Notes under the pieces: generated by a model
Seen by the model: only the letters and a program-made list of their open reading frames with translations
What the model was told of the DNA's origin: nothing
The model's database searches: none
Translations under genes and position numbers: made by a program
Part shown: positions 3,371 through 28,073 of the stretch, in pieces
Layout: every line of letters begins with the position of its first letter
Position numbering within the stretch: the stretch's first letter is position 1
NCBI GenBank assembly: GCA_038087875.1
Contig: CM075979.1
Location: 45,694,001 to 45,758,000, forward strand
DNA length: 64,000 bases
Direction of reading: 5' to 3'
Source of the DNA: Malacoraja senta
Lineage: Eukaryota

Positions 3371-3839
3371 TGTGAATGGGTAAGCGTTGGTCAGCGTGGA
3401 CTTTGTGGGCCGAAGGGCCTGTTTCCATGCTGTATCCACTCCCGCACCCTTGTCTCCCTTCCTGACGCTTCAAGTCCCACCACGAACAGTAGCTCTGAAC
3501 TGCTGCAGCTCAATATCCCGGACCCTGCCCCCCACTTCCATTCCCACCCCCCCCCTCCACCCCAAACTGCAGCCTCAGTATCAAACTACAGATGCTGTAA
3601 TCCTGAGCAATGCACAAAGTGCATCTGAAACTCAGAAGGTCAGACAGCGTCTGTGGAGGGAATGGACAGAAGACGTTTCGGGTTGAGAACGTCACTTGTC
3701 CATTCCATCCACAGATGCTGCCTGACCTGCTGAGTTCCTCCAGCACTTTGATTTGTGTACAATATTCTACAGAATGTAACTTATACTAAGTTACTAATTT
3801 ATTCTACTGATCAGATTGGTTCATTCCCTCTGGAATTAG

Positions 3840-4650: not shown

Positions 4651-5860
4651 TACCTTTCCTTTAGCCCTTAGAGCTAAATCTAACTCTTTCTTGAAAATAT
4701 CCAGTGAATTGGCCTCCACTGGCTTCTGTGGCAGAGAATTCCACAGATTCACAACTCTCTGGGTGAAAACGTTTTTCCCTCATCTCAGTCCTAAATAGCC
4801 TACCCTTTACTCTTAAACTGTGAGCCCTGGTTCTGGACTCCCCCAACATAGGGAACATGTACAGTTATATAAGATGACAGTGAGGCAGCATTTACAACAT
4901 TGTGTTCAGTTCTGGGCACCCATGTTATAGGAAAGATGGTGTCAAGCTGGAATGGGTATGGAGAAGATTTACGAGGACAAGGTTAATTCCCGGGATGGCG
5001 GGACTGTCATATGCTGAGAGAATGGACCAGCTGGGCTTGTACACTCTGGAGTTTAGAAGGATGAGAGGATATCTCATTGAAACATATAAAATTGTTAAGG
5101 GTTTTAGACACGCTAGATGCAGGAAACATGTTGCCGATGTTGGGGGAGTCCAGAACCAAGGGGTTTAAGAATAAGGAGTAAGCCATTTAGAAGGGAGATA
5201 AGGAAACACTTTTTCTCACAGAGAGTGTTGAGTCTGTGGAATTCTCTGCCTCAGAGGGGCGGTGGAGGCAGGTTCTCTGGATGCTTTCAAGAGAGAGCTA
5301 GATAGGGCTCTTAAAAATAGTGGAGTCAAGGTGATATGGGGAGAAGGCAGGAACGGGGGTACTGATTGGGGGATGATCAGCCATGATAACATTGAATGGC
5401 TACGAAGGGACCGAATGGCCTACTCCTGCACCTATTGTCTATTGATGTTGCCAGGACTCGACGGTTGTGAGCTATCGGGACAGGTTTAAACAGCTGGTAC
5501 TCTATTCCTTGGAGCGCAGGAGGATGAGGGGTGAACTTATAGAGGTGTATATAAACGCGCTATATAAATACAATTTATTATCATTATTATTATTATAGGT
5601 CGGGTAGATGCGCGGAGCACGGGTATCGAGGACCAGAGGACATAGGTTTAAGGTGAAAAAGATTAATAGGAATCAGAGCTGTCACAGGAGGTCGTTGAGG
5701 CAGGGACTATCGTTACGTTTAAGAAACAATTAAGACAGGTACATGGATCAGACAGGTTTGGTGGGGATTTGGGTGTGAAATACAGGCAGGTGGGACTAGT
5801 GAAACTGGGACATGTTGGCCGGTTTGGGAAGTTGGGCCGAAATGTGTGTTTTCACACTGA
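4650..5860. mobile_element. Cluster of CR1-like LINE 3' fragments in both orientations
   Basis: Translations such as [15 protein letters not shown]...LEFRRMRG and HFFSQRV..LWNSLP. Confidence 0.8.
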
Positions 5861-6004
5861 CTCTATGCTGAGTTACTCAGCACTGTGTGTCAGTGTGCAT
5901 CTGTGTTATTGATCAGGGCCACTCGATAGACGTCTAGTCCACCGATGTAATCAATAAATATCCAAAGCCAGCGGATGTACAGACGGGAAACAACGTGAGG
6001 ACAC

Positions 6005-6016
6005 GAAAACGAAAGT
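6005..6016 (+). promoter_or_regulatory. ISRE/IRF-binding element GAAAACGAAAGT
   Basis: Matches the GAAANNGAAA(G/C)T consensus, 17 nt upstream of the ATG; identical in the paralogue. Confidence 0.65.
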
Positions 6017-6032
6017 AATTCATCTCTGCAAG

Positions 6033-6162
6033 ATGGTGGCGGGGCAGGGCGCTGGCTGCGGCCGGACGAGGACTGTCTTGGGGCTGAGGGGCTGCTGCGT
6101 CTCTTCGGGAACCCGGCTACCGACCCTGTTACTGGCGCTGGCGTGGCTGCTACCCGCGGCAG
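6033..6162 (+). CDS. NCR3LG1: Exon 1, signal peptide (MVAG...RLPTLLLALAWLLPAA)
   Basis: ATG 6033 in a CpG-rich region; hydrophobic LLLALAWLL core ending PAA; donor G|GTA at 6162/6163 in phase 1; the split codon G+AT gives Asp at the start of the V exon. Confidence 0.8.
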
Positions 6163-6784
6163 GTANNNNNNNNNNNNNNNNNNNNNNNNNNNNNNNNNNN
6201 NNNNNNNNNNNNNNNNNNNNNNNNNNNNNNNNNNNNNNNNNNNNNNNNNNNNNNNNNNNNNNNNNNNNNNNNNNNNNNNNNNNNNNNNNNNNNNNNNNNN
6301 NNNNNNNNNNNNNNNNNNNNNNNNNNNNNNNNNNNNNNNNCTGCAAGTTGTACTTTCCAATCAACCATAAAAAGTCGATGGCATCTGCTTATCCTTTGCA
6401 ATGCTGACAATGGGCTGGCCCTTTGCAGAGTGCAGTCCTTGCAGTTTCAAATGTGACCAATGAAGCTCAAAGAGCCCGCCCAAAAACGGTGTCCATGAAA
6501 AGTCTTGCGGGTTATATAATGTAATGTAATCATCGTTTGATTGTTTTTTTGCTAAGTAGATATATTTGGTGAAGGAGTGGAGATATTTTAGACGTGTGAA
6601 AGAATACTAAAGAACTAAGAACTACTAAAACAGGGCGATCTGTCACATGAGTTACTCCAGCATTTTGCGTCTGTTTTCCACCTAGTTGACAGACACTGGC
6701 CTAAACTGGTCCTCCTGTAGAAACACGGAATTGCAGATGCTGCTTTACCGAGGAAAGACACAGAGTGCTTGAGTACATAGATAC

Positions 6785-8936
6785 AGATACATAGACAACA
6801 GGTGCAGGAGTAGGCCATTCGTGCCTTCAAGCCAGCACCGCCATTCAATGTGATCATGGCTGATCATCCACAATCAGTACCCCGTTCATGCCTTCTCCCA
6901 TGTCCCCTGATTCCGCCAGCCCTAAGAGCTCTATCTAACTCTCTTTTGAATGCATCCAGTGAATCGGCCTCCACTCCACTGCCTTCTGAGGCAAAGAATT
7001 CCACAAATTCACAACTCTCTGGGTGAAAAGGTTTTCCGCATCTCAGTTCTAAATGGCCTACCCCCATATTCTTAAACTGTGGCCCCTGGTTCTGGACTCC
7101 CCCAACATCGAGAACATGTTTCCTGCATCTAGTGTGTCCAATCCCATAATAATTTTATATGTTTCTATAACATACCCCTCTCATCCTTCTAAATTCCAGT
7201 GAGTACAAGCCCAGTCCGCTCCATTCTTTCATCATAAGTCAGTCACGCCATCATAAGTCAGTTAACGTCGTGAACCTATGTTGCACTCCCCTCAATAGCA
7301 AGAAAGTCGTTCCTCAAATTAGGAGACCAAAACTGCACACAATACTCCAGGTGTGGTCTCTCCAGGACCCCCGACTGGGAGTCAGGAGACAGCAAACTAG
7401 CGATTACTTAAAGAAGTAGCCCCAGAAATAGTGGATGCATTAGTGATAATTTTTCAAAACTCTTTAGATTCTGGAGTAGTTCCTGAGGATTGGAGGGTAG
7501 CAAACGTAACCCCACTTTTTAAAAATGGAGGGAGAGAGAAAATGGGGAATTACAGACCAGTTAGTCTAACATCGGTAGTGGGGAAACTGCTAGAATCAGT
7601 TATTAAAGATGGGATAGCAGCACATTTGGAAAGTGGTGAAATCATTGGACAAAGTCAGCATGGATTTATGAAAGGTAAATCATGTCTGACGAATCTTATA
7701 GAATTTTTCGAGGATGTAACTAGTAGAGTGGATAAGGGAGAACTAGTGGATGTGTTATATCTGGACTTTCAGAAGGCTTTCGACAAGGTCCCACATAAGA
7801 GATTAGTATGCAAACTTAAAGCACACGATATTGGGGGTTCAGTATTGATGTGGATAGAGAACTGGCTGGCAGACAGGAAACAAAGAGTAGGAGTAAACGG
7901 GTTCCTTTTCACAATGGCAGGCAGTGACTGGTGGGGTACCGCAAGGCTCAGTGCTGGGACCCCAGCTGTTTATGATATATATTAATGATTTGGACGAGGG
8001 AATTGAATGCAACATCTCCAAATTTGCGGATGACACGAAGCTGGGGGGCAGTGTTAGCTGTGAGGAGGATGCTCGGTAGGCTGCAAGGTGACTTGGACAG
8101 GCTGGGTGAGTGGGCAAATGCATGGCAGATGCAGTATAAATGTGGATAAATGTGAGGTTATCCACTTTGGTGGCAAAAACAGGAAAGTAGACTATTATCT
8201 GAATGGTGGCTGATTAGGAAAAGGGGAGATGCAACGAGCCCTGGGTGTCATGGTACACCAGTCATTAAAAGTAGGCATGCAGGTGCAGCAGGCAGTGAAG
8301 AAGGCAAATGGTATGTTAGCATTCATAGCAAAACGATTTGAGTATAGGAGCAGGGAGGTTCGACTGCAGTTGTACAGGGTCTTGTTGAGACCACACTTGG
8401 AGTATTGCGTACAGTTTTGGTCTCCTAATCTGAGGAAAGACATTCTTGCCATAGAGGGAGTACAGAGAAGGTTCACCAGACTGATTCCTGGGGATGGCAG
8501 GACTTTCATATGAAGAAAGACTGGATAGACTCGGTTTTGTACTCGCTAGAATTTAGAAGATTGCGGGGGGATCTTATAGAAACGTACAAAATTCTTAAGG
8601 GGTTGGACAGGCTAGATGCAGGAAGATTGTTCCACAATGTTGGGGGAAGTCCAGAACAAGGGGTCACAGTTTAAGGATAAGGGGGAAATCTTTTAGGACC
8701 GAGATGAGGAAAACATTTTTCACACAGAGAGTGGTGAATCTGTGGAATTCTCTGCCACAGAAGGTAGTTGAGGCCAGTTCATTGGCTATATTTAAGAGGG
8801 AGTTGGATGTGGGCCCCTTGTGGCTAAAGGGATCAGGGGGTATGGAGAGAAAGCAGGTACAGGATACTGAGTTGGATGATCAGCCATCATCATATTGAAT
8901 GGCGGTGCAGGCTCGAAGGGCCGAATGGCCTACTCC
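6785..8936. mobile_element. CR1 fragments: minus-strand 3' piece (about 6785-7370) and plus-strand RT region (about 7396-8936)
   Basis: NYRPVSLTSVVGKL, QHGF.KGKSCLTNL, LDFQKAFDKV and FADDTK motifs; frameshifted. Confidence 0.9.
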
Positions 8937-9162: not shown

Positions 9163-9501
9163 ATTCGTTGGATATGAACATTTTTGCCAGTCCGAAGAAA
9201 GTATTTTTGAAGGATTCGGTTTTGTTGGAATGTAAATTTTCTGGGTTTAAAGCACCGCTTGACTTGTCAAATGTAGGTGTGCGGTGGTTGTTCGGACCAC
9301 ACCAGGAAGAAATCTATGTTTTTCAAAAGGGAGAACATAGGCCCAAGAAACCTGGCATAGAAATATCCGACATTAAACTATCCGAAGGAGATGCTTCACT
9401 TCTGCTTCATAATGTCCAATTGGAAAATGAAGGGAATTATACTTGCATTGTGTTTGTCACTCCTGAAAAGGCAGAAAAGAGTTCGGAACTGCGAGTTTTA
9501 G
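9163..9501 (+). CDS. NCR3LG1: IgV-set exon of B7-H6-like protein
   Basis: Acceptor tttccatttag|AT, donor TTA G|GTAAA. LLECKF...PLDLSNVGVRW...GDASLLLHNVQLENEGNYTCIVFVTPEKAE parallels human B7-H6 as I recall it (PLNITSMGITW...[30 protein letters not shown]). Confidence 0.92.
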
Positions 9502-10314
9502 GTAAAAGACCATCAACATTACCCGGGGTGATCTGCACTGTTATTACTGGATCTTGGTGGTAAAAATGGGTTTCACCAATTGGCCTTCAACTACCAGCGT
9601 ATTGAATATAGAAGTTTGGAGGTCATGTTGCAGTTATATAAGACGTTGGTGAGGCTGTATTTAGAGTATTGTGTTCAGTTCTGGGCACCATGCTGTAGGG
9701 AAGATGTTGTCAAGCTGGAAAGGGTACAGAGAAGATTTACGAGGATGTTGCCAGGATTCGAGGGTCTGGGCTACAGGGAGAGGTTGAGCAGCCTGGGACT
9801 TTATTCTTGCGGCACAGGAGGATGAGGGGTGATCTTATGGAGGTGTATAAAGTTATGAGAGGAATAGATCGGGTAGACACACAGAGTCTCTTGCCCAGAG
9901 TAGGGCGATCGAGCACCAGAGGGCATATGATTTAAGGTGAATTGGCCCTCTGTAAATCACCTCTAGTGTGTCGAGAGTGGATGAGAAAGAAAGGATAACA
10001 GAACTAGTGTGAACGGGTGATTGATGGTTGACGTGGATTTAATGGACGTAGGGCCGATTTCAATGCTGATTCTCAAATAAAATTGCAAATGCAAAACTGT
10101 ATAAAGAGTGACCACGTCAAAAGTATTTTAGTGTTCTCATTAATATATGCTACATATACTTAGCTGAATAATGTGGCAATCTAAATCTGCATGTCGTCAA
10201 AGGCACTAAATTATAGGAAAGGAATGGTTGGCATGGACTCGATGGGCTGAAGGGCCTGTTTCCAAGCAGTATTAATCAATCAATCAAAAATCAACATTAA
10301 TTGACTTTTATAAC

Positions 10315-11326
10315 CATATAACAATTACAGCACGGAAACAGGCCATCTCGGCCCTTCTAGTCCGTGCCGAACACTTACTCTCACCTAGTCCCATCTACCT
10401 GCACTCAGACCATAACCCTCCATTCCTTTCCGTCCATATACCTATCCAATTTATTTTTAAATGATAAAATTGAACCTGCCTCCACCACTTCCACTGGAAA
10501 CTCATTCCACACAGCTACCACTCTCTGAGTAAAGAAGTTCCCCCTCATGTTACCCCTAATCTTCTGTCCCTTAATTCTCAAATCATGTCCTCTTGTTTGA
10601 ATCTTCCCTACTCTCAATGGAAAAAGCTTATCCACGTCAACTCTGTCTATCCCTCTCATAATTTTAAAGACCTCTATCAAGTCCCCCCTTAACCTTCTGC
10701 GCTCCAAAGAATAAAGACCTAACTTGTTCAACCTTTCTCTGTAACTTAGGTGCTGAAACCCAGGCAACATTCTAGTAAATCTCCTCTGTACTCTCTCTAT
10801 TTTGTTGACATCTTTCCTATAATTTGGCGACCAATATTGTACACCATACTCCAGAGTTGGCCTCACCAATGCCTTGTACAATTTTAACATTACATCCCAA
10901 ATTTTATACTCAACGCTCTGATTTATAAAGGCCAGCACACCAAAAGCTCTCTTTACCACCCTATCTACATGAGATTCCACCTTCAGGGAACTATGCACAG
11001 TTATTCCTAGATCCCTCTGTTCAACTGCATTTCTCAATGCGCTACCGTTTACCATGTACATCCTATTTTGATTTGTCCTGCCAAGATGTAGCACCTCACA
11101 CTTATCAGCATTAAACTCCATCTGCCATCTTTCAGCCCACTCTTCCAAATGGCGTAAATCTCTCTGTAGACTTTGAAAATCTACTTCATTATCCACAACA
11201 CCACCTATCTTATTATCATCTGCATACTTACCAATCCAATTTATCACACCATCATCAAGATCATTGATGTACATGACAAACAACAGTGGACCCAACACAG
11301 ATCCCTGAGGCACCCCACTAGTCACC
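10315..11326 (-). mobile_element. 5'-truncated CR1 LINE (RT C-terminal half)
   Basis: ORF 10405-11325: [14 protein letters not shown]...YADDNK...LEYGVQYWSP. Confidence 0.9.
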
Positions 11327-12003
11327 GGGTAAGGGAAATCTATTTTTATTAGGGCAAGGGTTGAAGGAAGGAAAGTGGTCCATTTTGTATTAGCCCATCA
11401 ATAGGTTAATATAGGACATAGGTTTAAGGGGAGAGGGGAAATATTTAATAGGAACAAGAGGAGCAACTTTTTCACAGAGAAGGTGGTGAGTGTATGGAAC
11501 AAGCTGCCTAACGAGGTAGTTGAGGCAGGTACTATAACAACATTTAAAAGACATTTGTACATGGATAGGAAAGGTTTAGAGTGTTATGGTCCAACACGGG
11601 CAGGTGGGATTGGGACAGCACAGTGGCACATCTGGTAGAGTTGCTGCCTCACAATGCAGGAGACCCAGGTTCAATCCTGACCATGGGTGCTGTCTGTATG
11701 GGGTTGTACGTTCTCCCTGTGACCACGTGGGTTTTCTCCAGGTGCTCCGGTTTCCTCCCACACTCCAAAGGTGTACAAGTTTATAAGTTAATTGACTTCT
11801 GCAAAACAAAATTGTAAATTGTCCATAGAGTAGGATCGTGCTAGTGCACAGGGCGATCGCTGTTTGGTGCGGACTCGTTGGGCTGAAGGGACAGTTTCCA
11901 CGCTGCATGTCTAAAGTCTAAACTAGTGTAGATGGGGCACTTTGGTCATTGTGGGCAAATTGGGCTGAAGGGTCTGCTTCTGTGCTGTATGCTGTGACCC
12001 TTA

Positions 12004-12688
12004 ACGGCCTGTCCCACTTACGTGTCCTTGGCACGCAAATTACGCGACCTCGTGGTCACGATGGTCCCGCGAAGGTCGGGCGCGATTAAATGCGTACACA
12101 CAGCCGTCGGGAGCGCGTGACGTCATTTGGAGATGGACACAAAGCTGGAGTAACTCAGCGGGACCGGCAGCATCTCCGGAGAGAAGCAATGGGTGACGTT
12201 TCGTGTCGAGACTCTTCTTCAGTCTGAAAAGAAGGGTCTTGACCCGAAACATCACCCATTGCTTCTCTCCGGAGATGCTGCCGGTCCCGCTGAGTTACTC
12301 CTGCATTTAGTGTCTATCTTCAATTTACTTGGCCCCGCTCTGGGAGTAGAAGTGGGGGCGGATCCGGACCGCAACGGCCGTGAGCCCCAGGCCGAGTTCG
12401 GCGATCGTTTGCCTGCTTCTGCTGCTGTTGAAGGTGAGACGTTGCGTCGCACCAGGGTCTTGGGCCTGTCCCACTTTGGCTGTCAGTTCCGCGACAGGCC
12501 GTTGGCGCGCGGAGATTTAGTTCACTACAAAAATTTCGGAGCCCCGTGCGATATCGCGCACAACTACATACCCCTCTGCGCTTCTCATTGGGTCCGGCCC
12601 CGCACGGCCACACAATGCCCGTGCGCCTCAATGCGACCACGAGGTTGCGTAATTTGCATGCCAAGGACACGTAAGTGGGACAGGCCCT
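12004..12688. mobile_element. PIF/Harbinger-type MITE with nested palindromic Penelope-derived unit
   Basis: About 55-bp TIRs (A(C/G)GGCCTGTCCCACTTACGTGTCCTTGGCA...) and TTA target duplication at 12001-12003 and 12689-12691; nested palindrome at about 12135-12315. Confidence 0.8.
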
Positions 12689-12779
12689 TTAGACTTAAGA
12701 GTCTTATAATATGACATAGTTATTTCTGGTAATACACTGCATGGCAACTAACCCGAGGTTGCACTTGTCTTTAATACAG

Positions 12780-13100
12780 TTCAGCCGAAGCTGCATTTAT
12801 CCACAGAACATGTTACCATTGAGACTGGTGCGGAGAAGCTGGTGATGTGTGATGCTACAGGATTTTACCCTCAGACACATAACATCTACTGGGGAAAAGT
12901 ATCCAAGGATAAGACTGAGAAACTAAGGCACGATGTCTTCATCACACCTCTAGTTCTTAATCTGGATAAAACCTTTAATGTCTCCATTAGAATGAGAATT
13001 AAACCAACTCTAGTTGATAATGGCAATGTGTACAAGTGTGTCGTGGAGCACCAATCATATAATGACGCACTCTCGCTCGAGTTGAAACTCACAGTCAAAG
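12780..13100 (+). CDS. NCR3LG1: Extracellular IgC1-set exon of B7-H6-like protein
   Basis: Acceptor ttaatacag|TT, donor AAA G|GTATG. VQPKLHL...MCDATGFYP...W...NLDKTFNVS...DNGNVYKCVVEHQS matches the B7-H6 C1 pattern (MCESSGFYP...NMDGTFNVT...DPGTVYQCVVRH). Confidence 0.92.
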
Positions 13101-16100
13101 GTATGTTACATCCTTTGGAAAAGTTTAGTTTAGTTTATTGTTACGTGTACCAAGGTAAAGTGAAAATTTTTTGTTTGCATGTTGTCGAGTCACAGAAACA
13201 TCGAAAAGTAGGTGCAGGAGTAGGCCATTCGACCCATCGAACCAGCATGATCATGGCTGATCATCTAAAATCAGTACCCCGTTCCTGCTTTTTTCCCATA
13301 TCCCTCGATTCCTTTAGCCCTAAGAGCTAAATCTAACTGTCTTGAAAACATCCAGTGAATTGGCCTCCACTGCCTTCTGTGGCAGAGAATTCCACAGATT
13401 CACAACTCTCTGAGTGAAAAGGTTTTTACTCATCTCAGTCCTAAATGGACCTACCCCTTATTCTTAAACTGTGACCCCTGGTTCTGGACTCCCCCAACAT
13501 CAGGAACATTTTTCCTGCATCTAGTCTGTCCAATCCTTTAAGAATTTAAGATACCCTCTCATCCTTCTAAATTCCAGTGAATAGTAGTCCAGAAAAGATT
13601 AGTTTGCTTTAGTTTATTGTCACGTGTACCAAAGGGCAGTTAAAAGCTTTAGTTGTATGCTAACCAGTCAGCGGAAAGACTATACATGATTACAATTGAT
13701 TCATTCACAGTGTACAGATCCATGACAAAGGGAATAACATTTAGTGCAAGATAAAATCCCGTAAAGTCCGAATAAAGATAGTCCAAGGGTTTCCAGTGAG
13801 GTTGCCTGTTGCTCAGGACCGTTGTCTAATTGTTGAGAGGATGATTCAGTTGCCTGATAACAAACTATACATGAATACAACCAAGCTGTCCACAGTGCTT
13901 GGATAAAGGGCACAATATTTAGTACAAACTTTGAAGTCCAATAAAGATTGTTTAAAGGTCTCCAATGAGATAGATGGGAGGTCAGGACCACAATCTAGCT
14001 GATGAAACGGCCATTCAGTTGCCTGATAACAGCTGGGAAGAAACTGTCCCTGAATCTGGAGGTTTTTGCTTTTAAACTTCTGTATCTCTTGCCTGATGGG
14101 AGAGGGGAGAAGAGGGAGTGACCAGGGTGATTCCCTTGATTATGCTGGTGGCCTTGCCGAGGCAGCGTGAAGTGCAGATGGAGTCAGTGGAAGGGAGGTT
14201 AGCTTGCACGATGGTCTGCGCTGCGTACACAACTCTAATTTCTCGCTGTTCCAGAACCATGTTATGATGTCTCCCAATAAGATTCTTTCTATATCAAAAC
14301 TGTAGAAGCTTGTGAGGGTTGTTTGGGACATACCGATCATCTGAGCCTTATAAGGAAGTGTGCTTTCTTGGCCTTAGCTTCAATGTGGCTGGTGCAAGAC
14401 AAATTAATTTTGTTATTTATTCATAGGAACTTGGAGATATTTTACAGCGTACTTTATTAAAATGTTTCCAATAATATATATGAAAATATTTGTGTGTGCT
14501 TAATACATATCCTTCACTGAGATGTGCAGTGCTTTAACTAGTGTTTATCCTTTGACCAAGATAAGAATGAGAGGATTTAAGATGAGAGGGGAAAGAGTTA
14601 TTAGAAACTTGAGAATAACTTTTTCAGAAAGAGGTGGTGCGTATATGGAAGGAGCTGCCAGGGGAGGTAGTTGAGGCAACATTTAAAAGACATTTGGAGA
14701 GGTTAGAAGGATATGGGGTAAATAAGGACAGGTGTCAACAGTCAAGTCAAGTCAAGAGAGTTTATTGTCATGTGTCCCAGATAGGACAATGAAATTCTTC
14801 CAAGTGTTTAATAGGCATTTGTACCGAAAACGGAACAATTAAATTCTTACTTAGATGGACTACTGTAGATGGGGCATCTTGGTCAGCATGGAGAAGTTGG
14901 GCAGAAGGGCCTATTTCCATGCTGTATGACTCTCTTCCACAACAAGTAGATACAGTCTCAGCCATTGAGAATGAACATAATCCTGGCACATTTGTGGTTT
15001 GGTGGGGAAGTTTGGTTCTGGTCTTTCATTGACTGCTTAGTAATTCATACAGGTTTTTGTGGCCTGGCAGTGCAAGCTTTTGGGAGACCCTGATAGAAAT
15101 ATCTAACATAATTAGAGGCATTGATAGGTGTAGAACCTTTTTCCCAGAGTGGAAATGTCAAAGACTGGAGGACATAGCTTCAAGGTGAACAGGGCAAAGA
15201 TTAAAGAAGATGTGCAGAACAAGTTTTTTACACAGAGAGTGTCTGGAACACGCTGCCAGGGGAGGTGATGGAGGCAGATTCCATAGTGGCATTAACTAGG
15301 CTTAAATCAGCACATAGATATACAGGGAATTAAGGGATATGGATGATATACAGGCAGATTAATTTAATTTGGCATCATGTTCAGCATGGACATTGTGGGC
15401 CGAAGGGCCTGTTCCTGTGCTGTATTGTTCTAAATTTGTTCTTTCCATATGCCATTAAAGTATAATTTTTTTCAGCCTAGTTGCCATGAGTAATATTTTT
15501 CTCATTTTTCCCCTTTCTATGTACATTAGCTTAATCTCTTAATCTCTCCTTTCCAATATGCCGCAGCAGAATTTACTTTATTGCCAGTTCGGATCTGCGC
15601 TGACCAGCGATCAACCCCCTCCCCCCCTCCCCCCACCGCACTATCCTACACATTACGGACAATTTACAATCTTACCAAAGCCAATTAAGTTACAAACCTG
15701 CACGTCTTGGATTGTGGGATGAAACCGGAGCACAGAGAGAAACCCACACAGGTCACAGGGAGAACGTACAAACTCCATACACACAGCACGTAGTCACGAT
15801 TGATCCCGGGTTTTTGGCGCGTAAGGCTGCAACTCTACTGCTGCGCCACTATGCCGCATCTAAAAGTAACTATTACACACCTCTCTTCTGTACGTGTGGG
15901 TGAGTCGAGTCAGAAATTGAGGTGTGAATAGCCCTCTAAACACTTGAATTATTTCTGATTGCAGCAGAAATAATGGAATCACTAATTGGAATTCCTAGGC
16001 CTTTAATTAAAGGGGGATATAAATTGCACAATTATGGTTTCAATGTTAATAACTGTCCCCCTCCCCCTCCCTTTTTCCTTCCCTTTACCACCCGCCCCTT

Positions 16101-16457: not shown

Positions 16458-16571
16458 AACCTGTGGAATATTCGTCAACAGGGGCTATTGTTGGAGTTGT
16501 ATTTGCTGTAATTATTATATTGCCACTACTTGCCTTTGGACTCTATATGTTCATCGTGAAATACAGACCAG
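16458..16571 (+). CDS. NCR3LG1: Transmembrane exon (EPVEYSSTGAIVGVVFAVIIILPLLAFGLYMFIVKYRP)
   Basis: Acceptor ttacattccag|AA, donor CCA G|GTAAT; about 26 uncharged residues followed by basic KYR; 114 nt, phase 1-1. Confidence 0.88.
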
Positions 16572-17122
16572 GTAATATGACAAATGGAGAACGTTCCTCA
16601 ATGCGTTGTAATTGTCTGCCTCGAGTTATAGCAGCTACAGCACGGAAACAGGCCATTCAGCCCACCACATCCTCGCCGACCATCGGGCACTCGTATACAT
16701 AAATATCATTTCATTCAGCCCACTTTCCCATGAGCTCGTACCTGATCCTACCACATTCCTCACACACAAGCGGAAAGTTACAGGGCACAATTAACCTAAC
16801 TTTTTGGGGTGCAGGAGGAAACCAAAACACCCAACATGGGGAACGTGCAAACTCCACATAGACAACATATGAGGTTAGCATTGAACCCCGCCTGTGTGCT
16901 GTGTAAAGTACTGGAGTTGTGTGGCTTTTGTGATTCTTTGATTGCTTGTTACATTTCCCCAACATGGAGGGCTGGTGATCTATTAGTTTCAACCACAGAT
17001 GACCCTGTGATGATTGTATACCCATATAGACAGGCAGCCAGGCTTGGAGCTTCTCTTTGAATGGCCTTCTGGGCATAACTTGTTTCAGTTATAATTTTAG
17101 AGATACAGTGTGGAAACAGGCC

Positions 17123-18258
17123 CTTAAAGCACACGGTATTGGGGGTTCAGTATTGATGTGGATAGAGAACTGGCTGGCAGACAGGAAGCAAAGAGTAGGA
17201 GTAAACGGGTCCTTTTCACAATGGCAGGCAGTGACTAGTGGGGTACCGCAAGGCTCGGTGCTGGGACCCCAGCTATTTACAATATATATTAATGATTTGG
17301 ACGAGGGAATTGAATGCAACATCTCCAGGTTTGCAGATGACACGAAGCTAGGGGGCAGTGTTAGCTGTGAGGAGGATGCTAGGAGACTGCAAGGTGACTT
17401 GGATAGGTTGGGTGAGTGGGCAAATGCATGGCAGATGCAGTATAATGTGGATAAATGTGCGGTTATCCACTTTGGTGGCAAAAACAGGAAAGTAGACTAT
17501 TATCTGAATGGTGGCCGATTAGGAAATGGGGAGATGCAACGGGACCTGGGTGTCATGGTACACCAGTCATTGAAAGTAGGCATGCAGGTGCAGCAGGCAG
17601 TGAAGAAAGCGAATGGTATGTTAGCATTCATAGCAAAAGGATTTGAGTATAGGAGCAGGGAGGTTCTACTGCAGTTGTACAGGGTCTTGGTGAGACCACA
17701 CCTGGATTATTGCGTACAGTTTTGGTCTCCTAATCTGAGGAAAGACATTCTTGCCATAGAGGGAGTACAGAGAAGGTTCACCAGACTGATTCCTGGGATG
17801 GCAGGACTTTCATATGAAGAAAGACTGGATAGACTCGGCTTTTACTCGCTAGAATTTAGAAGATTGAGGGGGGATCTTATAGAAACTTACAAATTTCTTA
17901 AGGGTTTGGACAGGCTAGATGTAGGAAGATTGTTCCTGATGTTGGGGAAGTCCAAAACAAGGGGCCACAGTTTAAGGATAAGGGGGAAGTCTTTTAGGAC
18001 CGAGATGAGAAAAAAAAAATTTCACAAAGAGAGTGGTGAATCTCTGGAATTCTCTGCCACAGAAGGTAGTTGAGGCCAGTTCATTGGCTATATTTAAGAG
18101 GGATTTAGATGTGGCCCTTGTGGCTAAGGGGATCAGGGGGTATGGAGAGAAGGCAGGTATGGGATACTGAGTTGGATGATCAGCCATGATCATATGGAAT
18201 GGCGGTGCAGGCTCGAAGGGCCGAATGGCCTACTCCACCTATTTTCGATGTTTCTATG
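17123..18258 (+). mobile_element. 5'-truncated CR1 LINE
   Basis: RT motifs in ORF 17057-18073 ([14 protein letters not shown]) and TTTCTATG-type tail. Confidence 0.9.
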
Positions 18259-18577
18259 ACCAGTGATCGCCCCATATACTAGTTCTATCAAGTCCGCGCC
18301 GACCAGTGATCGCCCCATATACTAGTTCTATCCTTCTCACTTGGGATAATGTACAGAAGCCGATTAACCCACAAACCTATACGTCTGTGGAATCTGGGAG
18401 AAAACCCACGCGGTTACAGGGAGAATGTATAAACTTCGTACAGACAGCACCCGAGGTCTGGATTGAACTCTGGAGTCTGGTGGTGTGAAGTAGTACTTTT
18501 CCACTGCACCACATTGCCGCCCCATATTAACTTGCATTTTGAAAGGCCTGTTCCTGATTGCACGCTTGCATGTGCTA

Positions 18578-18660
18578 ACACACACACATACATACACGCA
18601 CACACACATACACGCACACACACACACTCGCACGTACACGCACACGCATAAATATACACA
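18578..18660. repeat. Imperfect (CA)n microsatellite
   Basis: acacacacatacatacacgcacacacac... seen directly. Confidence 0.9.
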
Positions 18661-18907
18661 GACATTATATCTCCTGTACTTCCTGCATAACAATTAAAAT
18701 GAATGTACAAGAAATAATATTTAATGTAGGAAGGAACTGCAGATGCTGGTTTACACTGAAGATAGACACAAAATGCTGGAGTTACTCAGCGGGTCAGGCA
18801 GCATCTCTGGAGAAAAGGAATAGGTGACGTTTTGGGTTCAGACCCTTGTATCTTCAGAAAGAACATTTAGATTGCCAAGTTTTAATTACCTGCTTTGTTT
18901 TGACTAG

Positions 18908-19339
18908 TTCGTCCAGAGATCACTGGCCCCAATGGACATCAAACCATGAAACATCTTGAAAAAAAAAAGGCCACTTGGAGGGTTAGTCCATTCCGACCTT
19001 GTGAAATTATAATTCACTTATACCTAAAGAGGAAGGGGGATCAGGTGAGAAGTACAATTTTAGATTGGGACAGCAGAAAATTTCTTGAAAACAGAAATGG
19101 AATGATCAACGGAGAGGGTCGCAATGAAGCGTGGATTCTTATGAATTCAAATTGGGTCGATGCATCTTTTACACCTTTGGATCCCGAATATAACATTAAT
19201 GCAGATGGGATTGTGACGATCAATGTGGAAATATATCCAGATGTTAACAAGGATGCAGGGGCTGAATTAACCATTGAAGTTCAACATACATCACTGAAAC
19301 AGCCGATATCAAAGACTTTGTTACTGGATGTTATAGGAG
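18908..19339 (+). CDS. NCR3LG1: First post-TM exon: degenerate IgC1-type domain without canonical cysteines
   Basis: Acceptor tgttttgactag|TT, donor GGA G|GTAAA; open frame VRPEITGP...ATWRVSPFRP...NADGIVTINVEIYPDVNKDAGAELTIEVQHTSLKQPISKTLLLDVIG keeps C1 spacing (xxRP start, FxP, NxDG, VxHxSL). Confidence 0.8.
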
Positions 19340-20557
19340 GTAAAGTATAAATGTTTTCTTTAATCATTAATGTCTATATATTGTGATTTCAGTCCGAATG
19401 TCTTCAGAGACATAGAGTGATACAGCGTAGAAACAGGCCCTTCAGCCCAACTTGCCCAAGCTGACCAACATGTCAGTCAGTCTGGACACTTCATCCCATC
19501 TGCCTGCGTTTGGTCCATATCCCTCTAAACATGTTCTATCCATGTACCCGCCTAAATAGTTCTTTAAAATTGTGATAGTACCTACCTCAACTATCTCGTC
19601 TGGCAGCTTGATCCATACACTCACCACCTTTGTATGAAAAGGTTACCCCTCAGATTCTGATAAAATCTTTCCACCCTCCTCATCTGAAATCTATGTCCTC
19701 TGGTCCTCGATTCACCTACTCTGGGCAAAAGACTCGGTGCATCTACCCGATCTATTCCTCTGATGATCTTCTACACCTCTATTTGATCACCCCTCATCCT
19801 CTTGCGCTCCAAGTCCTAGCCTGCTCAACCTCTCCCTGTAGCTCAGGCCCTCAGGTCCTGGCAACATCCTCGTAAATCTTCTCTGCACCCTTTCCAGCTT
19901 GACAACATCTTTCTTGTAACAAGGTGTCCAAAATCTGCTGAACATGATGCCAAGATAAACTAATCTCTGCTGCTTGCATGCACTCCATGTCCCTCCATTC
20001 CCTGCATATTCATGTGCCTATCTAAAAGCTTCTTAAACACCACCATTGTATCTGCCTCCACCACCACCACCCCTGGCAGCATGTTCCACGCTGTGTTTAA
20101 AAATGAAACGCCCCTCACCTCTCCTTTAAACTTTGCCACTCTAATCTTAAAGCTATGCCCTCCAGTCTTAGACATTTCCACCCTGGGAAAAATATTCTGA
20201 CTGCCTACCTTTCATCATGTACGTCTCGATGGGCCGAAGGGCCTTTCCACGCTGTACCTCTAAACTAAACTAAACTAAATCAGGACCATTCTCTGGTTGG
20301 TAATAGGATGGTTCAATTGCCTGATAACAACTAATACATTAGTAATGGTAATACATTTGCAATGGGGGACTAGAACTGCACGCAATACTCCAACTATGGC
20401 CTAACCAAAGTCTGCAGAGCTGCATCGTGACCTTAACACTTTTAGGAGATTCTCTCATCAGTCGACTCAAAGTCATGGAAAATTCACACAGTAATGTAAT
20501 ATGTTCTTGCTTTTGTGAATTTCAACTAGTTGATTTGTTTGTTTTCTTTTCTCAAAG

Positions 20558-20935
20558 TGCCACCCAAGGTTTTAAACATCTTCAAACCCTCTTGCATCAT
20601 TCACAATAAATCTGCATCTTTGTTCTGTTCAATCACTGGGTTTAAACCGAGACCTTTACGTATCACGTGGCAACGAAAGAGAAAGAACATGGAGGCAGAA
20701 GAAATAGTTCGAATGGAGGAGGACAACAGGACAATTATTTCCGGTGGTGACGGGGAGATGTCCACATATAAACATTACATCAGTGAGATGAAGCACGATG
20801 ATGAATCCTACAGCATCACTAGTGTACTAGAGATAGTGCCTGATATACAGCAAGATCAAGGCTCACTTTACACCTGTAAAGTACATCACAACGGCACCAA
20901 TGACCAGGAGAGAGAAATCAAGTTAATGATTGCAG
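20558..20935 (+). CDS. NCR3LG1: Second post-TM exon: IgC1-set domain with both cysteines
   Basis: Acceptor ttttctcaaag|TG, donor GCA G|GTATA; VPPKV...LFCSITGFKPRPLRITW...DESYSITSVL...YTCKVHH. Confidence 0.87.
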
Positions 20936-22679
20936 GTATATAATACTTCCATCTAAGCCTTGCATTGACAGAGGATGCAGAGTGCGTACTTATTTGGAAT
21001 GGTGTCTTAAATATCATACCACAACCATTAATGTACGCAGAGCGTTTGAAGGCTCTGGGTCTGTGCTAGCTGGAGTTTAGAAGGACGAGGGGGGAATCTC
21101 AATGAAACCTACTGAATAATGAAAGGCCTGGATAGACTGGATGTAAAAAAGATGTTTCTACTAATGTGAGAGTCCAGGACCAGACTCGGAGTAAAAGGAT
21201 GTACCTTTAGAATGGAGATGAGGAGTAATTCCTTTCGTCAGAGGTTGGTGACTCGGTGGAATTCATTGCTACAGACATCTGTGGAAACCAAGTCATTGGG
21301 TTTTTCACAGCGGAGATTTATAGGTTGTTGATTAGTAAGAGTGTGAAAGGTTATGGGGAGAAGGCAGGAGAATGGGGTTGAGAGGGAAAAATAGATGGCA
21401 AAGTAGACTAGATGGGCCGAATGGCCTAATTGTGGTCCTATAACTTATGAACGTATAAATTATCTAATGATATAGAACGAAGAACGGTACGGCACAACCG
21501 CTCGACCCACAATGCCTGCACATAAACCATATCCCTCCATATCCATGTGCCTATCCAAAAGTCTATTAAATGCCACTATCCTTTCTGCCTCAACCACCAT
21601 CCCCGGTAACGCGTTCCAGACACTCACCCCCATCTATATTAAAAAAATTGACCCACACATCTTCTTTAAAATTTGCCCTCTCACCTTAAAACTATGGCCT
21701 CTAGTATTTGATTGTTCTATCCTTTTTTTCTCCGGACAGAGGCTCTGACTGTCTACCCTATCTATGCCTCTCCTGATTTTATGTACCTCATTCAGGCCTC
21801 AGACCTTTTTGACCACCCGATCTACCTGCGATTCCACCTTCAAGGAACCTTGCACCTGAACTCCTAGATCCCTCTGCTCCACAACACTCCCCAGAGCCCT
21901 ACCATTTACTGTGTTGGTCCTGCCCATGTTAGACTTCCCAAAATGCAACATCTTACATTCTCTGTATTAAATTCCATCAACCATTCCTCAGCCCACCTGG
22001 CCAATCGATCCAGATCCTGCTGCAATTCTTCACAACAATCTTCACTAACTGCAAAACCACCCATTTTTTTAACCTTATGTTTCTGCCGACAAGTATAGAT
22101 CCCTTAATTTATTTTCTTGCATTAACCTTAGAACTATATTCTGCACTCTGTATCTTCCCCTTTGTTCTATTTATTGTATTTGAATTTGACTTGATTGTGT
22201 TTGTGCCTGGTACATCTGATCTGGTGGGATTGCCTGCAAAACAAAGCTTTTCACTGTACCTGTACATGTGACAATAATACACCTGAACCTAAACCACGTG
22301 GTTTTACTGCAGTAAGATCTTCTGCTATGAGCCACAGGCGCAGATGCTGAATTATTTCAATTTATATTCCCTGGGTTGACAGAGAGACATTTGTCCAGTG
22401 TGAATAGCCCAGTTCATTCTGAATTCTAGTAAACATTAGGCTTGTAGCAGGGACGGGGTCAGAGGGAATTTGATGTCTAGAATGATGTATTTAACTAAAT
22501 AACAGTTGTACGTAACTTGTCCTGCAGCAACATGCAGATCTTTAGTCAGGTTAAGGCTTCTCTTAGAGTCATAGAACCATAGAGTGATACAGTGTGGAAA
22601 TAGGCCCTTCGGCCCAATTTGCCCACACTGGCCCACATGTCCCAGCTACACTAGTCCCACCTGCCAACATTTGGTCCAT

Positions 22680-23460
22680 ATAAGGTTCATATAAGGTTCA
22701 TAAGGTTCCTTTATTGTCACCTACACCAATTAGTGTGAAATTCGAGTTGCCATTGCAGCACATTAATAAGAATACAACATAACATTATAAAGAAAATTTA
22801 ACATAAAACATAAAAAGTCCCCCCACAATGGTTCTGACTGTGAGGGAAGGCACAAAGACCAGTCCCCATCCCCTTGTCCACCCATAGTCGGGCCTATTGA
22901 GGCCTCCACAGTCGCTGCTACGGGGCCCGATGTTTCAGGCCCTTCTCGCTGGGTGATGGTGCTCCGGCGTTGGGAGAACCCTCTCAGCGGCTTGGGACGC
23001 CTGGAACGGCCGTTTCCTTACACGGGACCGCGGCGTCCGAAGCCGACAGGCCGCGCTGGATGGAGCTCCACCATTGGTGATCTCGGCGAGAGATCCCAGG
23101 CTCTGCGATGTTAAAGTCAGCGCCGCCGCCCGCGGCTGGCCGCTCCACAGTCCCGCAGCTCCGCGATATTTCATCGGCGGTCTCAGCTCACCGGAGTTCC
23201 AGCGCGGCGACCCGGGCAGGGCATCGCCCGCTCCGCGATAGCGCTCCAGCGCTGTGCCGCCGCCGAAGCCGAGGTTCTGGCCGGTCCCGTCAGGAAACTC
23301 CGCTCCAGACCCCAATGGTAGGTCGCGAGGACGGGTCGAGATGCTGCTCGGAGGAAAGCCGCCTCTTCGACCAGGCAGGGACGTGGAAATACAGTTTCCC
23401 CCTTCCCCCACCCACCCTCCACACATAAAAGAATAGACCACCAAACAAAAACACTTTTTA
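22680..23460 (-). mobile_element. Unclassified GC-rich non-autonomous retroelement-like repeat
   Basis: Short tandem tail (taaggttca)n plus CTTTATTGTCA (GACAATAAAG on minus), GC-rich body; splits a LINE-tail fragment; similar layout at 31215-32010. Confidence 0.4.
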
Positions 23461-23763
23461 ATATACTAAAAATAAAAAAATTAAAATGAAAGGACGAAGA
23501 GGGGAAGTCGAAGAGGGGAACCCCCGCTCCCTAAAGAATGAGGACATCTCAGATGCCCTGGTTAGGAACACCTCATCCTGGGTGCAGATGCGGTGTAGAC
23601 GGAGGAATTGGGAGTAGGACGTAGAGTCCTTACAGGAAGGAGGGTGGGAAGATTGGTTGGTTCTACTACTCTGGGCACGAGACTGCATCTACCCGATCTA
23701 TTCCTCTCATGATTTGATACACCTTTATAAGATCACCCCTCATTCTCCTGCACACCAAGGAAT

Positions 23764-26700
23764 TTACTCAGAACTGCTGTAGATTTGGGAGCAACAGCAG
23801 CAGGAGATTAGCAAGAGATACGACTGATTGGCTCTAGCCCGAGTGGGAGGAGAGAAGTGAGTCAGTGCCGGAAAACAGTTGAAAACTGAGGAATTTTGTT
23901 TGTAAATTGGTAAATCAGGCAATTTATCCGTCAATTTAAGCAATATGGCTCTTAGCGAGCGGCAGTGAGGGAGCGGCCTTGTGAGGGAAGTGCGAGTCTT
24001 TGGCTCGAGAGTCTTCGGTGAGGAGACCACGCAATACGCTTGAGAGGTAGAGACGAAAGAAGGAGATGTCAGGCAAGCTGATTCAGTGCGATGCTTGCGG
24101 TATGTGGGAGGTCAAGGACACTGCTGGTGCCTCTGGCTGCTACATATGCGAGAAGTGCATCCAGGTAGAGCTCCTGAAGGGCCGTGTTGGGGAACTGGAG
24201 AAGCAAGTGGATGACCTCAGGTTCGTCCAAGAAACTGAGTCGTTCCTCGACAAGTCCTACAGTAAGATTGTTTACACCTAAGGTACTGGAATAGAGAAGG
24301 TGGGTGACGGTGAGAAAGGGAGGGAAACATGGAATGCAAACGTCCCTGGGTGTTGTACCTCTTGTGAACAGGTTCGCCCACTTAGAAACTGTCGGGACAG
24401 AAGACGTTATCACACTGAGCGGCGGACTGGCTTGCAATGCGAATAGGGCTGTTGAGCCAAAACCAAAATGGCCTAAGGCAGGCAACGCCATTGTAGTGGG
24501 AGACTCCATTGTGAGAGGTACGGACAGGGGTTTCTGCGGGAACAGACGGGATTCGAGGATGGTGTGCTGCCTTCCTGGTGCCAGGATCCAGGATGTCACG
24601 GACAGAGTGCAGAAAATCCTCAAGGGCGAAGGTGAACAGCCGGAAGTGGTAGTGCATGTCGGCACAAACGATGTCGGAAAGAAGGGGATGAATATTCTGC
24701 AGCGTGACTTTAGAGAGCTCGGAAAAATGCTGAAAAGCAGGACCTCCAGGGTTGTTATCTCCGGTTTGCTTCCAGTTCCTCGTGCTGGCGAGAGCAGGAA
24801 CAGGGAGATACGGGACCTGAACGTGTGGCTGAGGAACTGGGGCACGGGGCAGGGATTTAGATTCTTAGATCACTGGGATCTGTTTTAGGGTAAGGGGGGA
24901 ACTGTGCAAAAGGGACGGATTGCATCTTAACATGTGTGGGACCAGCATTCTGGCAGGCAGGTTTGCCACTGCTACACGGGTGGTTTTAAACTGAATAAGG
25001 GGGGTGGGGTGTCGAATGGGATAGTGGAGGATGGAGTTAAAGGGAAAGGGTTTCTTAAATGTGTGAGCGTAGAGACAGAGGGGTGTAAAATGAGGGTAGA
25101 AGCAATAGGTAGCAAGATGAAAAGTAAAAGTGGCAGGCAGACAAAACCAGGGCAAAAATCAAAAAGGGCCACTTTTCAACATAATTGTATAAGGGGTAAG
25201 AGTGTTGTAAAAACAAGCCTGAAGGCTTGGTGTCTCAATGCAAGGAGCATTCGTAATAAGGTGGATGAGTTGAATGTGCAGATAGCTATTAATGACTATG
25301 ATATAGTTGGGATCATGGAGACATGGCTCCAGGGTGACCAAGGCTGGGAGCTGAACATCCAGGGATATTCAATATTCAGGAGGGATAGACAGAAAGGAAA
25401 AGGAGGCGGGGTAGCGTTGCTGGTTAGAGAGGAGATTAACACAATAGAAAGGAAGGACATTAGCTTGGAGGATCTGGAATCGATATGGGTAGAGCTGCGA
25501 AGCACTAAGGGGCAGAAAACGCTGGTGGGTGTTGTGTACAGGCCACCTAACAGTAGTGAAGTTGGAGATGGTATCAAACAGGAAATTAGAAATGCGTGCA
25601 ACAAAGGTAAAACAGTTATAATGGGTGACTTCAATCTACATATAGATTGGGTGAATCAAATTGGCAGGGGTGCTGAGCAAGAGGATTTCTTGGAATGTAT
25701 GCGGGATAGTTATCTAAATCAACATGTAAAGGAACCAACGAGAGAGCAGGCTATTTTAGACTGGGTATTGAGTAATGAGGAAGGGTTAGTTAGCAGTCTT
25801 GTTGTACGTGCCCCCTTGGGCAAGAGTGACCATAATATGGTTGAGTTCTTAATTAGGATGGAGAGTGACATTGTTAATTCAGAAACAATGGTTCTGAACT
25901 TAAAGAAAGGTAACTTTGAGGGTATGAGACGTGAATTGGCCAAGATTGACTGGCAATTAATTCTAAAAGGGTTGACGGTGGACATGCAATGGAAGACATT
26001 TAAAGACTGCATGGATGAACTACAAAAATTGTTCATCCCAGTTTGGCAAAAGAATAAATCAGGGAAGGTAGTGCATCCGTGGATAACAAGGGAAATCAGG
26101 GATGGTATCAAAGCGAAGGATGATGCGTACAAGTTAGCCAGAAAAAGCAGCATACCGGAGGACTGGGAGAAATTCAGAGACCAGCAGAGGAGGACAAAGG
26201 GCTTAATTAGGAAAGGAAAAATAGATTATGAAAGAAAACTGGCAGGGAACATAAAAACTGACTGCAAAAGTTTTTATAGATATGTAAAAAGAAAGAGATT
26301 AGTTAAAACAAATGTAGGTTCCTTGCAGTCAGAAACAGGTGAGTTGATCATGGGAACAAGGATAAAAATAATCTGCCGGAAATAGCAGGGGACCGCGGGT
26401 CAAAGGAGTTGGAGGAATTGAGTGAAATCCAGGTTAGTCGGGAAGTGGTTTTGGGTAAATTGAATGGATTAAAGGCCGATAAATCCCCAGGGCCAGATAG
26501 GCTGCATCCCAGAGTACTTAAGGAAGTAGCTCCAGAAATAGTGGATGCATTAGTAATAATCTTTCAAAACTCTTTAGATTCTGGAGTAGTTCCTGAGGAT
26601 TGGCGGGTAGCAAACGTAACCCCACTTTTTAAGAAGGGAGGGAGAGAGAAAACGGGGAATTACAGACCAGTTAGTCTAACATCGGTAGTGGGAAAACTGC

Positions 26701-28073
26701 TAGAGTCAGTTATTAAAGATGGGATAGCAGCACATTTGGAAAGTGGTGAAATCATTGGACAAAGTCAGCATGGATTTACGAAAGGTAAATCATGTCTGAC
26801 GAATCTTATAGAATTTTTCGAGGATGTAACTAGTAGCGTGGATAGGGGAGAACCAGTGGATGTGGTGTATCTGGACTTCCAGAAGGCTTTCGACAAGGTC
26901 CCACATAAGAGATTAGTATACAAACTTAAAGCACATGGCATTGGGGGTTCAGTATTGATGTGGATAGAGAACTGGCTGGCAAACAGGAAGCAAAGAGTAG
27001 GAGTAAACGGGTACTTTTCACAATGGCAGGCAGTGACTAGTGGGGTACCGCAAGGCTCAGTGCTGGGACCCCAGCTATTTACAATATATATTAATGATCT
27101 GGATGAGGGAATTGAAGGCAATTTCTCCAAGTTTGCGGATGACACTAAGCTGGGGGGCAGTGTTAGCTGTGAGGAGGATGCTAGGAGACTGCAAGGTGAC
27201 TTGGAGAGGCTGGGTGAGTGGGCAAATGTTTGGCAGATGCAGTATAATGTGGATAAATGTGAGGTTATCCATTTTGGTGGCAAAAACAGGAAAGCAGACT
27301 ATTATCTAAATGGTGGCCGACTAGGAAAAGGGGACATGCAGCGAGACCTGGGTGTCATGGTACACCAGTCATTGAAAGTAGGCATGCAGGTGCAGCAGGC
27401 AGTGAAGAAAGCGAATGGTATGTTAGCAAAAGCATTGTGAGTATAGTGAGCAAGGGAGGTTCTACTTGCCAGATTGTACAGGGTCTTGTGGTGAGACCTA
27501 CACCTTGGAGTATTTGCGTACAGTTTTGGTCTCCAAATCTGAGGAAGGACATATTGCCACAGAGGGAGTGCAGAGAAGGTTCACCAGACTGATTCCTGGA
27601 TGTCTGGAATGTCTTATGAAGAAAGACTGGATAGACTTGGTTTATACTCTCTAGAATTTAGGAGATTGAGAGGGGATCTTATAGAAACTTACAAAATTCT
27701 TAAGGGGTTGGACTGGCTAGATGCAGGAAGATTGCTCCCAGTGTTGGGGAAGTCCAGGACAAGGGTCACAGCTTAAGGATTAAGGGGAAATCCTTTAAAA
27801 ACCGAGATGAGAAGAACGTTTTTCACACAGAGAATGGTGAATCTCTGGAACTCTCTGCCACAGAGGGTAGTCGAGGCCAGTTCATTGGCTATATTTAAGA
27901 GGGAGTTAGATGTGGCCCGTGGCTAAAGGGATCAGAGGGTATGGAGAGAAGGCAGGTACGGGATACTGAGTTGGATGATCAGCCATGATCATATTGAATG
28001 GTGGTGCAGGCTCGAAGGGCCGAATGGCCTACTCCTGCACCTAATTTCTATGTTTCTATGTTTCTATGTTTCT
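23764..28073 (+). mobile_element. Near full-length CR1 LINE (ORF1 zinc finger plus SGNH esterase; ORF2 APE plus RT), mildly decayed
   Basis: ORF1 CDACGMW...CEKC, GDSIVRG, VHVGTND (24066-24888); ORF2 CLNARSIRNK, MGDFN, SDHN, RT (about 25160-27970); (TTTCTATG)n tail; AAT target duplication at 23761-23763 and 28074-28076. Confidence 0.93.

Follow-up and report, generated by a model that had tools for sequence, protein, structure and literature searches.

A 432-nt exon on the forward strand of a 64,000-nucleotide stretch of Malacoraja senta contig CM075979.1 (hereafter referred to as the window) encodes a domain, termed X, that recalls an immunoglobulin (Ig) C1-set domain, lacks the residues that form its intersheet disulfide, and comes immediately after an exon encoding a transmembrane (TM) helix. 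This combination raises the question of whether X is an Ig domain at all, whether it is intact or decaying, and whether the loss of the disulfide reveals a domain that resides in the cytosol, as a preliminary description of the locus had proposed. The analysis presented here identifies X as a genuine, selectively maintained Ig domain and as the fixed first tail module of an uncharacterised gene family.

The host gene lies on the + strand, and all of its exons begin and end in phase 1 (Table 1). The open reading frame of the leader exon translates as MVAGQGAGCGRT...LLLALAWLLPAAG, and this exon runs into an N gap. The TM exon lies directly upstream of X and encodes a strong helix, with a mean hydropathy of 2.93 over its best 20-residue stretch. 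The X exon is flanked by an acceptor AG at 18906-18907, preceded by a pyrimidine tract, and by a donor GT at 19340-19341, and it reads through codons 18910-19338 with zero stops; the boundaries given for it in the preliminary description proved exact. An imperfect (CA)n/(CACG)n microsatellite occupies positions 18560-18640, ~270 nt upstream of this exon. Read-through of the TM-exon donor (16572-16702, +) adds 43 open codons up to a TAA stop, partly in SINE-like repeat, and intron retention or early polyadenylation at this point would yield a short V-C1-TM protein comparable to Mobula P0096 (272 residues).

Table 1. Exons, subregions and key codons of the X-bearing gene in the window.
Feature	Positions	Strand	Basis and remarks
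Leader (signal peptide) exon	6033..6164 (end approximate)	+	tblastn with Amblyraja P0001 residues 1-28, 82 % identity
IgV exon, B7-H6-like V type	9163..9501	+	Phase 1-1, splice sites read; Pfam V-set E 8e-11
C1a, first C1-set exon	12780..13100	+	Splice sites read; Pfam C1-set E 2e-9; canonical Cys...Trp...Cys
TM cassette exon	16458..16571	+	38 codons, phase 1-1, EPVEYSSTGAIVGVVFAVIIILPLLAFGLYMFIVKYRP; AG/GT sites
X exon	18908..19339	+	143 codons, phase 1-1; C1-derived Ig domain without B-F disulfide
Trp23 codon, B-strand Cys position	18976..18978	+	Alignment
X insertion, strands C' to D	19072..19167	+	Residues 55-86; helix 55-64, then loop
Ile122 codon, F-strand Cys position	19273..19275	+	Alignment
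C1b, canonical C1-set exon	20558..20935	+	Pfam C1-set E 4e-13

Sensitive tblastn searches with the skate orthologue identified no exon past C1b in the last 43 kb of the window (20936-64000), where the C1c and later exons, the acidic repeats and the last Ig-like domain of skate orthologues were sought. The Amblyraja gene spans 115 kb, and the missing downstream exons of the present gene reflect either a very long intron or a truncated copy. A second leader-like exon, 74 % identical to Amblyraja residues 1-35, is found at 53370-53474 (+). Both leader copies precede an N gap and share similar flanking ORF fragments (53246-53885 and 5890-6407), suggesting a tandem or segmental duplication of the 5' end of the gene; no V or C1 exon was found between the second leader and base 64000, and no NKp30-like V exon was recognised within the window. 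The window is rich in LINE and SINE fragments. One LINE family encoding endonuclease and reverse transcriptase fills introns and intergenic space on both strands (24934-27440, 55212-58508, 17057-18073 and 7431-8513 on the + strand; 10405-11325 and 51938-52537 on the minus strand), and two of its copies are nearly full length. An AT-rich block at 40000-46300 (GC 0.33-0.35) contains a different, L1-like retrotransposon, with long ORFs at 42633-46270.

Searches with the single sequence of X were largely uninformative. The 143-residue translation matched no Pfam family at E<=1, I-set included, a single-sequence search of the PDB returned nothing useful, and an ESM Atlas feature search yielded weak Ig leads only. 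The exon thus falls beneath the detection limit of the Pfam C1-set model (PF07654). An AF2 model built with an alignment of 40 X domains folds with high confidence (pLDDT 84.4, pTM 0.78) into strands A-G, and Foldseek matched it to at least 500 Ig structures in the PDB at E<=1e-3, in agreement with the Ig fold proposed for X. In Swiss-Prot, the chicken tapasin C1 domain ranks first among the Foldseek matches, and beta-2-microglobulin is listed as well. Superposition with VIA-align (Z about 12, 110-116 residues) favoured V-type domains, because the insertion of ~30 residues between strands C' and D lengthens the domain. Profile comparison with hhalign aligned X with the C1b family over 127 columns (99.6 %, E 7.7e-24), and the best 60 PDB matches listed for the X-family profile are chains bearing C1-set domains (E 2.5e-6 to 1e-3), among them the heavy-chain constant regions of IgA and IgM, MHC class II beta and beta-2-microglobulin. 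The C1 skeleton previously claimed for X is therefore borne out both by its predicted beta-sandwich and by profile homology: X is C1 by descent and V-like in size. An affiliation with the cytosolic I-set domains of titin, obscurin and MyBP-C was considered and rejected, since X has no I-set match in Pfam, its homology is to the C1-set, and X-family proteins carry a signal peptide and an ectodomain; a MyBP-C structure does occur among the Foldseek matches, through general Ig resemblance only.

The closest paralogue of X is encoded next to it. X and C1b share an A-B-C motif (PPK.S.I..P..I.H.E..L.C.I.GF.P..I.I), an F-G motif (D.GAEL..EV.H) and an identical exon phase, and X arose through duplication of this neighbouring long C1-set exon. 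Like the C1-set at large (PF07654; Ig constant domains, MHC II beta2, beta-2-microglobulin, tapasin and C1b), X is a seven-strand beta-sandwich, from which it differs by lacking the B-F disulfide and the C-strand Trp and by having a new Trp (W53) on strand C'. The long insertion noted earlier is also real: the AF2 model renders it as a helix followed by a low-confidence loop, with pLDDT below 50 for residues 65-71 and 73-81. About 16 of its residues are surplus with respect to the C1b exon in the hhalign comparison, and in the alignment of 40 domains its length and sequence vary across the family. Of the two basic patches singled out in the preliminary description, KRK proved to belong to a family-wide LKRK motif at the C-C' turn (R41 is present in at least 90 % of the family, and C1b has W-Q-R-K-R-K at this place), whereas EKKK varies even among skates.

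The residues that replace the canonical core were assessed in the alignment of 40 X domains, comprising X from the window and 39 homologous domains, and against the C1b exon. As initially proposed, the B-strand Cys is replaced by Trp23, the F-strand Cys by Ile122 (AELTIEVQH, retaining the V-x-H of the Y-x-C-x-V-x-H signature), and the C-strand Trp is absent, with Leu37 in its place (codon 19018-19020). The label "cysteine-less" attached to X does not hold literally, for the domain contains Cys31 (FRPCEII). Across the alignment the B-strand column contains Cys in 18 of 40 domains, mostly from bony vertebrates, and Trp in 17, typically from cartilaginous fishes. The F-strand column is occupied by Val (17), Ile (12), Leu (8), Phe (2) and a single Cys; the latter belongs to a sawshark (Pristiophorus) paralogue that also retains the B-strand Cys and the C-strand Trp. 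Trp53 is nearly invariant (36/40). The core of X has thus been repacked with hydrophobic residues, which take the place of the disulfide and the Trp and which in this skate are Trp23, Leu37, Ile122 and Trp53. Strand E carries a Cys in 30 of the 40 domains, though not in batoids; an alternative disulfide between strands B and E was rejected, as this Cys occurs with or without the B-strand one.

Loss of key residues in a former C1 exon is also what would be seen in a nonfunctional pseudo-exon, and the missing canonical Cys and Trp, the failure of Pfam to see X, the missing downstream exons of the gene and the crowding of the locus with LINE insertions are all compatible with decay. The conservation of X speaks strongly against it. 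By tblastn, X shares 85 % identity with Amblyraja radiata LOC116984368, and its identity to the counterparts in Leucoraja erinacea and Rhinoraja longicauda is 76-78 %; in the comparison with Amblyraja it exceeds both the V (74 %) and C1a (81 %) exons and ranks below C1b (92 %). The Cys and Trp replacements seen in the window recur in all six further batoid orthologues examined, none of them retaining both cysteines, and the F-strand Cys has been lost in 39 of the 40 domains. Being common to batoids and to the family, the replacements are therefore ancient and inherited and do not represent degeneration of the copy in the window. With a family conserved across jawed vertebrates, an open frame, intact splice sites and a confident AF2 fold, the earlier argument that the open 432-nt frame speaks against simple decay is upheld, and dN/dS estimates among Callorhinchus paralogues concur: eight X exons are all open, and their pairwise values lie mostly at 0.25-0.69. 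We consequently regard a pseudo-exon as extremely improbable. X is at least 400 My old and under selection, and the B-F disulfide and the C-strand Trp were replaced early in jawed-vertebrate history. The Callorhinchus milii exons come from a tandem cluster on MU249848.1, with at least three family genes (800-5100, 10001-15748 and 18742-25650) and eight X-type exons in 25 kb; X exons of its upstream gene show dN/dS of 0.85-1.09, faster than the rest of the cluster.

An exhaustive HMMER search with X (E<=1e-3) over 1.84 billion representative sequences returned 45 homologues. The sources of 30 of these were looked up and comprise skates, rays, sharks, a chimaera, coelacanth, polypterids (bichirs), frogs and a newt; all 30 proteins are annotated as uncharacterized, except for two named NCR3LG1 by their sources. 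Searches of the accessible literature yielded no description of the X family or of its tail. The family follows the general build signal-V-C1-TM-X-(X or C1)n, in which X is always the first domain following the TM segment, an order kept from chimaera to frogs. Tails of repeated X domains occur in chimaera, some sharks and ranid frogs, and tails in which a row of canonical C1 domains leads up to a final Ig-like domain are found in batoids, sharks, chimaera, coelacanth, polypterids, frogs and newt. The last domain of the long forms (P0001, P0002, P0003, P0007, P0085, P0100 and P0101) follows the pattern …AHIIWY.D.YPFDE..YVTN.PF.N..GFTT.LTYTPK…; it is highly conserved in batoids and catshark and more divergent in chimaera P0085, it is without a Cys on strand F, and Pfam assigns it to no specific family. 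A Hypanus isoform joins this domain straight to the TM by splicing. Between the usual TM and X, four ranid frog members (P0021, P0008, P0024 and P0043) carry an additional pair of TM helices with the loop KGWRPWI...; this hairpin matched no recognised family, and the ranid members end in a basic WRRWKKR-like tail.

The extracellular head of these proteins has clear relatives. The closest solved structures to the V-C1a region of a ray orthologue are those of human NCR3LG1/B7-H6 (6yjp, 3pv6 and 4zso; E about 4e-31), ahead of CD276, and reciprocal matches with 35 % identity link the head to mammalian (vole) NCR3LG1-like proteins; stingray short forms are likewise named NCR3LG1-like. Judged by sequence, the V-C1 head is a homologue of B7-H6/NCR3LG1, the NKp30 ligand, with which it shares its V-C1-TM arrangement. 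Human B7-H6 continues into a Gag-like cytoplasmic tail; in the X family the TM is optional, and what follows it is a set of between one and seven X domains, as many as ~6 C1 domains, or both. The chain of C1 domains also invites comparison with elasmobranch UrIg2, which consists of a VJ domain, 9-11 C1 domains and a TM (PMC12227049), and a structure of which appears among the C1 matches. Both are cartilaginous-fish genes with a long C1-set chain behind one V domain, plastic exon numbers and acidic stretches (PMC12227049). UrIg2 has a VJ-type V, canonical disulfides in each solved domain and a C-terminal TM, whereas in the X family the V is of B7 type, the TM lies in mid-chain and X is disulfide-less. 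An identification of the gene as UrIg2 was rejected.

The placement of X directly under the membrane, as the preliminary description had it, applies to TM-containing forms and would not hold for annotated isoforms that skip the TM exon. A single TM right before X is present in 24 of the 45 representatives, and in these 24 members the net charges of the TM flanks add up to -30 N-terminally and +32 C-terminally. At the same time, pairs of NCBI isoforms differ by the TM segment alone in Hemitrygon (38 aa), Heterodontus (31 aa) and Rana (37 aa), and TM-less models are also annotated in Scyliorhinus and others. As the TM exon is symmetric and is skipped in these isoforms, the whole chain would therefore be secreted. 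This arrangement resembles that of soluble Fas, a soluble receptor isoform arising through skipping of the TM cassette (exon 6 absent): in both cases the TM exon is symmetric, and skipping it yields a secreted product in place of a membrane protein and exports a tail that is normally cytosolic. The X-family tail differs, however, in consisting of Ig C1 domains with conserved disulfide cysteines, which suggests that the secreted form is more than an incidental product. One Callorhinchus gene encodes C1a and TM in a single exon, with a 260-nt intron to its first X exon, and there the TM cannot be skipped alone; in ranid frogs, the three TMs before X would keep X on the cytosolic side.

The joining of TM and X could in principle be spurious. 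Under this alternative, V-C1-TM would be a complete B7-H6-like gene, X-C1n would belong to a separate downstream gene for a secreted protein, and the long TM-containing proteins would be fusions created by annotation pipelines. Short forms ending after the TM, or jumping from the TM to the last domain, do exist (Mobula P0096, for instance, has a tail of only 9 residues), the uniform 1-1 phase of the exons puts any join in frame, the doubled V-C1 of the Amblyraja and Leucoraja models suggests merging across tandem copies, and the window contains a second leader-like exon at 53370. The X exon itself nonetheless begins in phase 1 and so requires an upstream exon, and a scan of 16572-18907 for a leader gave only weak candidates in repeat-rich DNA. 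Elsewhere in the family, the short TM-to-X intron of Callorhinchus and the persistence of the TM-then-X order from chimaera to frogs also contradict two separate genes, as does elephant-shark V9K7L7, presumably a transcript-derived entry, which spans the TM-X junction and encodes signal-V-C1-TM-X-C1x5 within one ORF. We give an annotation artefact only a slim chance; TM-containing long forms are widespread and look real.

If the TM is normally included, the whole tail would be cytoplasmic, for example as a reverse-signalling scaffold of a B7-H6-like ligand, and the disulfide, Trp pin and sequons of X would have been lost because the domain has to fold and function under the reducing conditions of the cytosol. 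That most members have a single strong TM right before X, flanked by charges biased as in a type I anchor, is in keeping with such a topology, as are the fused C1a-TM exon and short intron of Callorhinchus, the three TMs of ranid frogs, which keep parity, the V9K7L7 ORF joining TM and tail, and the absence of the F-strand Cys from all but one of the X domains. In some tails, moreover, X repeats are the only domains; the linkers of these tails are acidic, Ser-rich and CK2-like, and their C-termini are basic. The preliminary description had gone further and taken the loss of the disulfide and of sequons as independent support for a cytosolic location. This argument fails on C1b, on the sequon counts and on the TM cassette. 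C1b, which would share its side of any membrane with X, keeps its Cys-Trp-Cys (C23, W37 and C106) in 16/16 species from chimaera to newt, and in the window it also carries three sequons (NKS, NRT and NGT; P = 0.035 by shuffling), of which the N-[RT]-T sequon recurs in skates, rays, catshark and basking shark. For a cytosolic tail, the C1 domains after X would thus have preserved an invariant Cys-Trp-Cys over about 450 My together with a lineage-conserved sequon, and we know of no C1-set domain that functions in the cytosol.

The sequon counts of X itself point the same way. X in the window has 11 Asn and, as had been noted, no N-X-S/T sequon, yet zero sequons are also obtained in 30 % of shuffles (P=0.30). 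Sequons are present in X of Narcine, Hemitrygon and Leucoraja, and, counted over kindred rather than independent sequences, X domains family-wide contain 47 sequons against 36 expected from shuffling, a 1.3-fold excess that compares with 1.6-fold for C1b. Overall, and again over kindred sequences, there are 63 sequons before the TM against 42.7 expected and 109 after it against 96 expected, a weaker enrichment after the TM that is consistent with a cytosolic tail; X is nevertheless, if anything, enriched. Examined as an indicator of redox compartment, odd Cys counts are frequent in V-C1a, X and C1b alike; unpaired, non-conserved Cys, a point in favour of a cytosolic tail, are common in the tail domains, although they occur in the ectodomain too. 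The extra Cys conserved in most X domains, together with TM-skipping isoforms annotated in three distant lineages, further weakens the case for a cytosolic domain. Nor does loss of the B-F disulfide require a cytosolic location, as is shown by domain 1 of CD2 and domain 1 of CD58, extracellular Ig domains in which the intersheet disulfide is naturally missing. In X, as in these domains, a hydrophobic core replaces the disulfide; the CD2 and CD58 domains differ from it in being V-type adhesion domains, X being C1-derived and placed after an optional TM. Taken with the topological evidence, a juxtamembrane cytosolic X that owes its altered core to the cytosol is possible but on balance unlikely, and we are similarly doubtful, if slightly more so, that X, perhaps together with the entire C1 tail, has a cytosolic function in cells displaying the B7-H6-like ligand.

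With a probability of roughly 60 %, we favour instead a tail shaped in the secretory pathway, in which X would be cytosolic only in TM-containing isoforms and the disulfide loss would be specific to the domain. The tail looks made for the secretory pathway, given the Cys-Trp-Cys and the N-[RT]-T sequon of C1b, the excess of sequons and the E-strand Cys found in three quarters of X domains (30/40). When the TM cassette is skipped, the product would be a secreted V-C1-X-C1n chain in which X may act as an extracellular spacer with a flexible 30-residue loop; when the cassette is included, V-C1 would be displayed at the cell surface, with X directly under the membrane on its cytosolic side. It would be the secretory, TM-less context that shaped the tail, and the missing disulfide of X would be a domain-specific event, as in other extracellular disulfide-less Ig domains, and no signature of the cytosol.

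X defines a divergent and unnamed C1-set subfamily, invisible to Pfam and kept since the origin of jawed vertebrates, and it offers a natural experiment in repacking the Ig core without a disulfide. It also marks an unstudied B7-H6-like family in which the membrane anchor sits in the middle of an Ig chain and is included or removed by splicing. Were X cytosolic, it would represent the first adaptation of a C1-set-derived Ig domain to the reducing cytoplasm, perhaps as a reverse-signalling or clustering scaffold, and skipping of the TM exon would give the same chain a second, extracellular life; a cytosolic tail would also break the rule that confines C1-set domains to the secretory pathway. 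An extracellular tail would make the family a group of large NK-ligand-like proteins of cold-blooded vertebrates, both secreted and membrane-bound. In either case the family is relevant to how the B7/NKp30 axis and the C1-domain proteins around the MHC first evolved.
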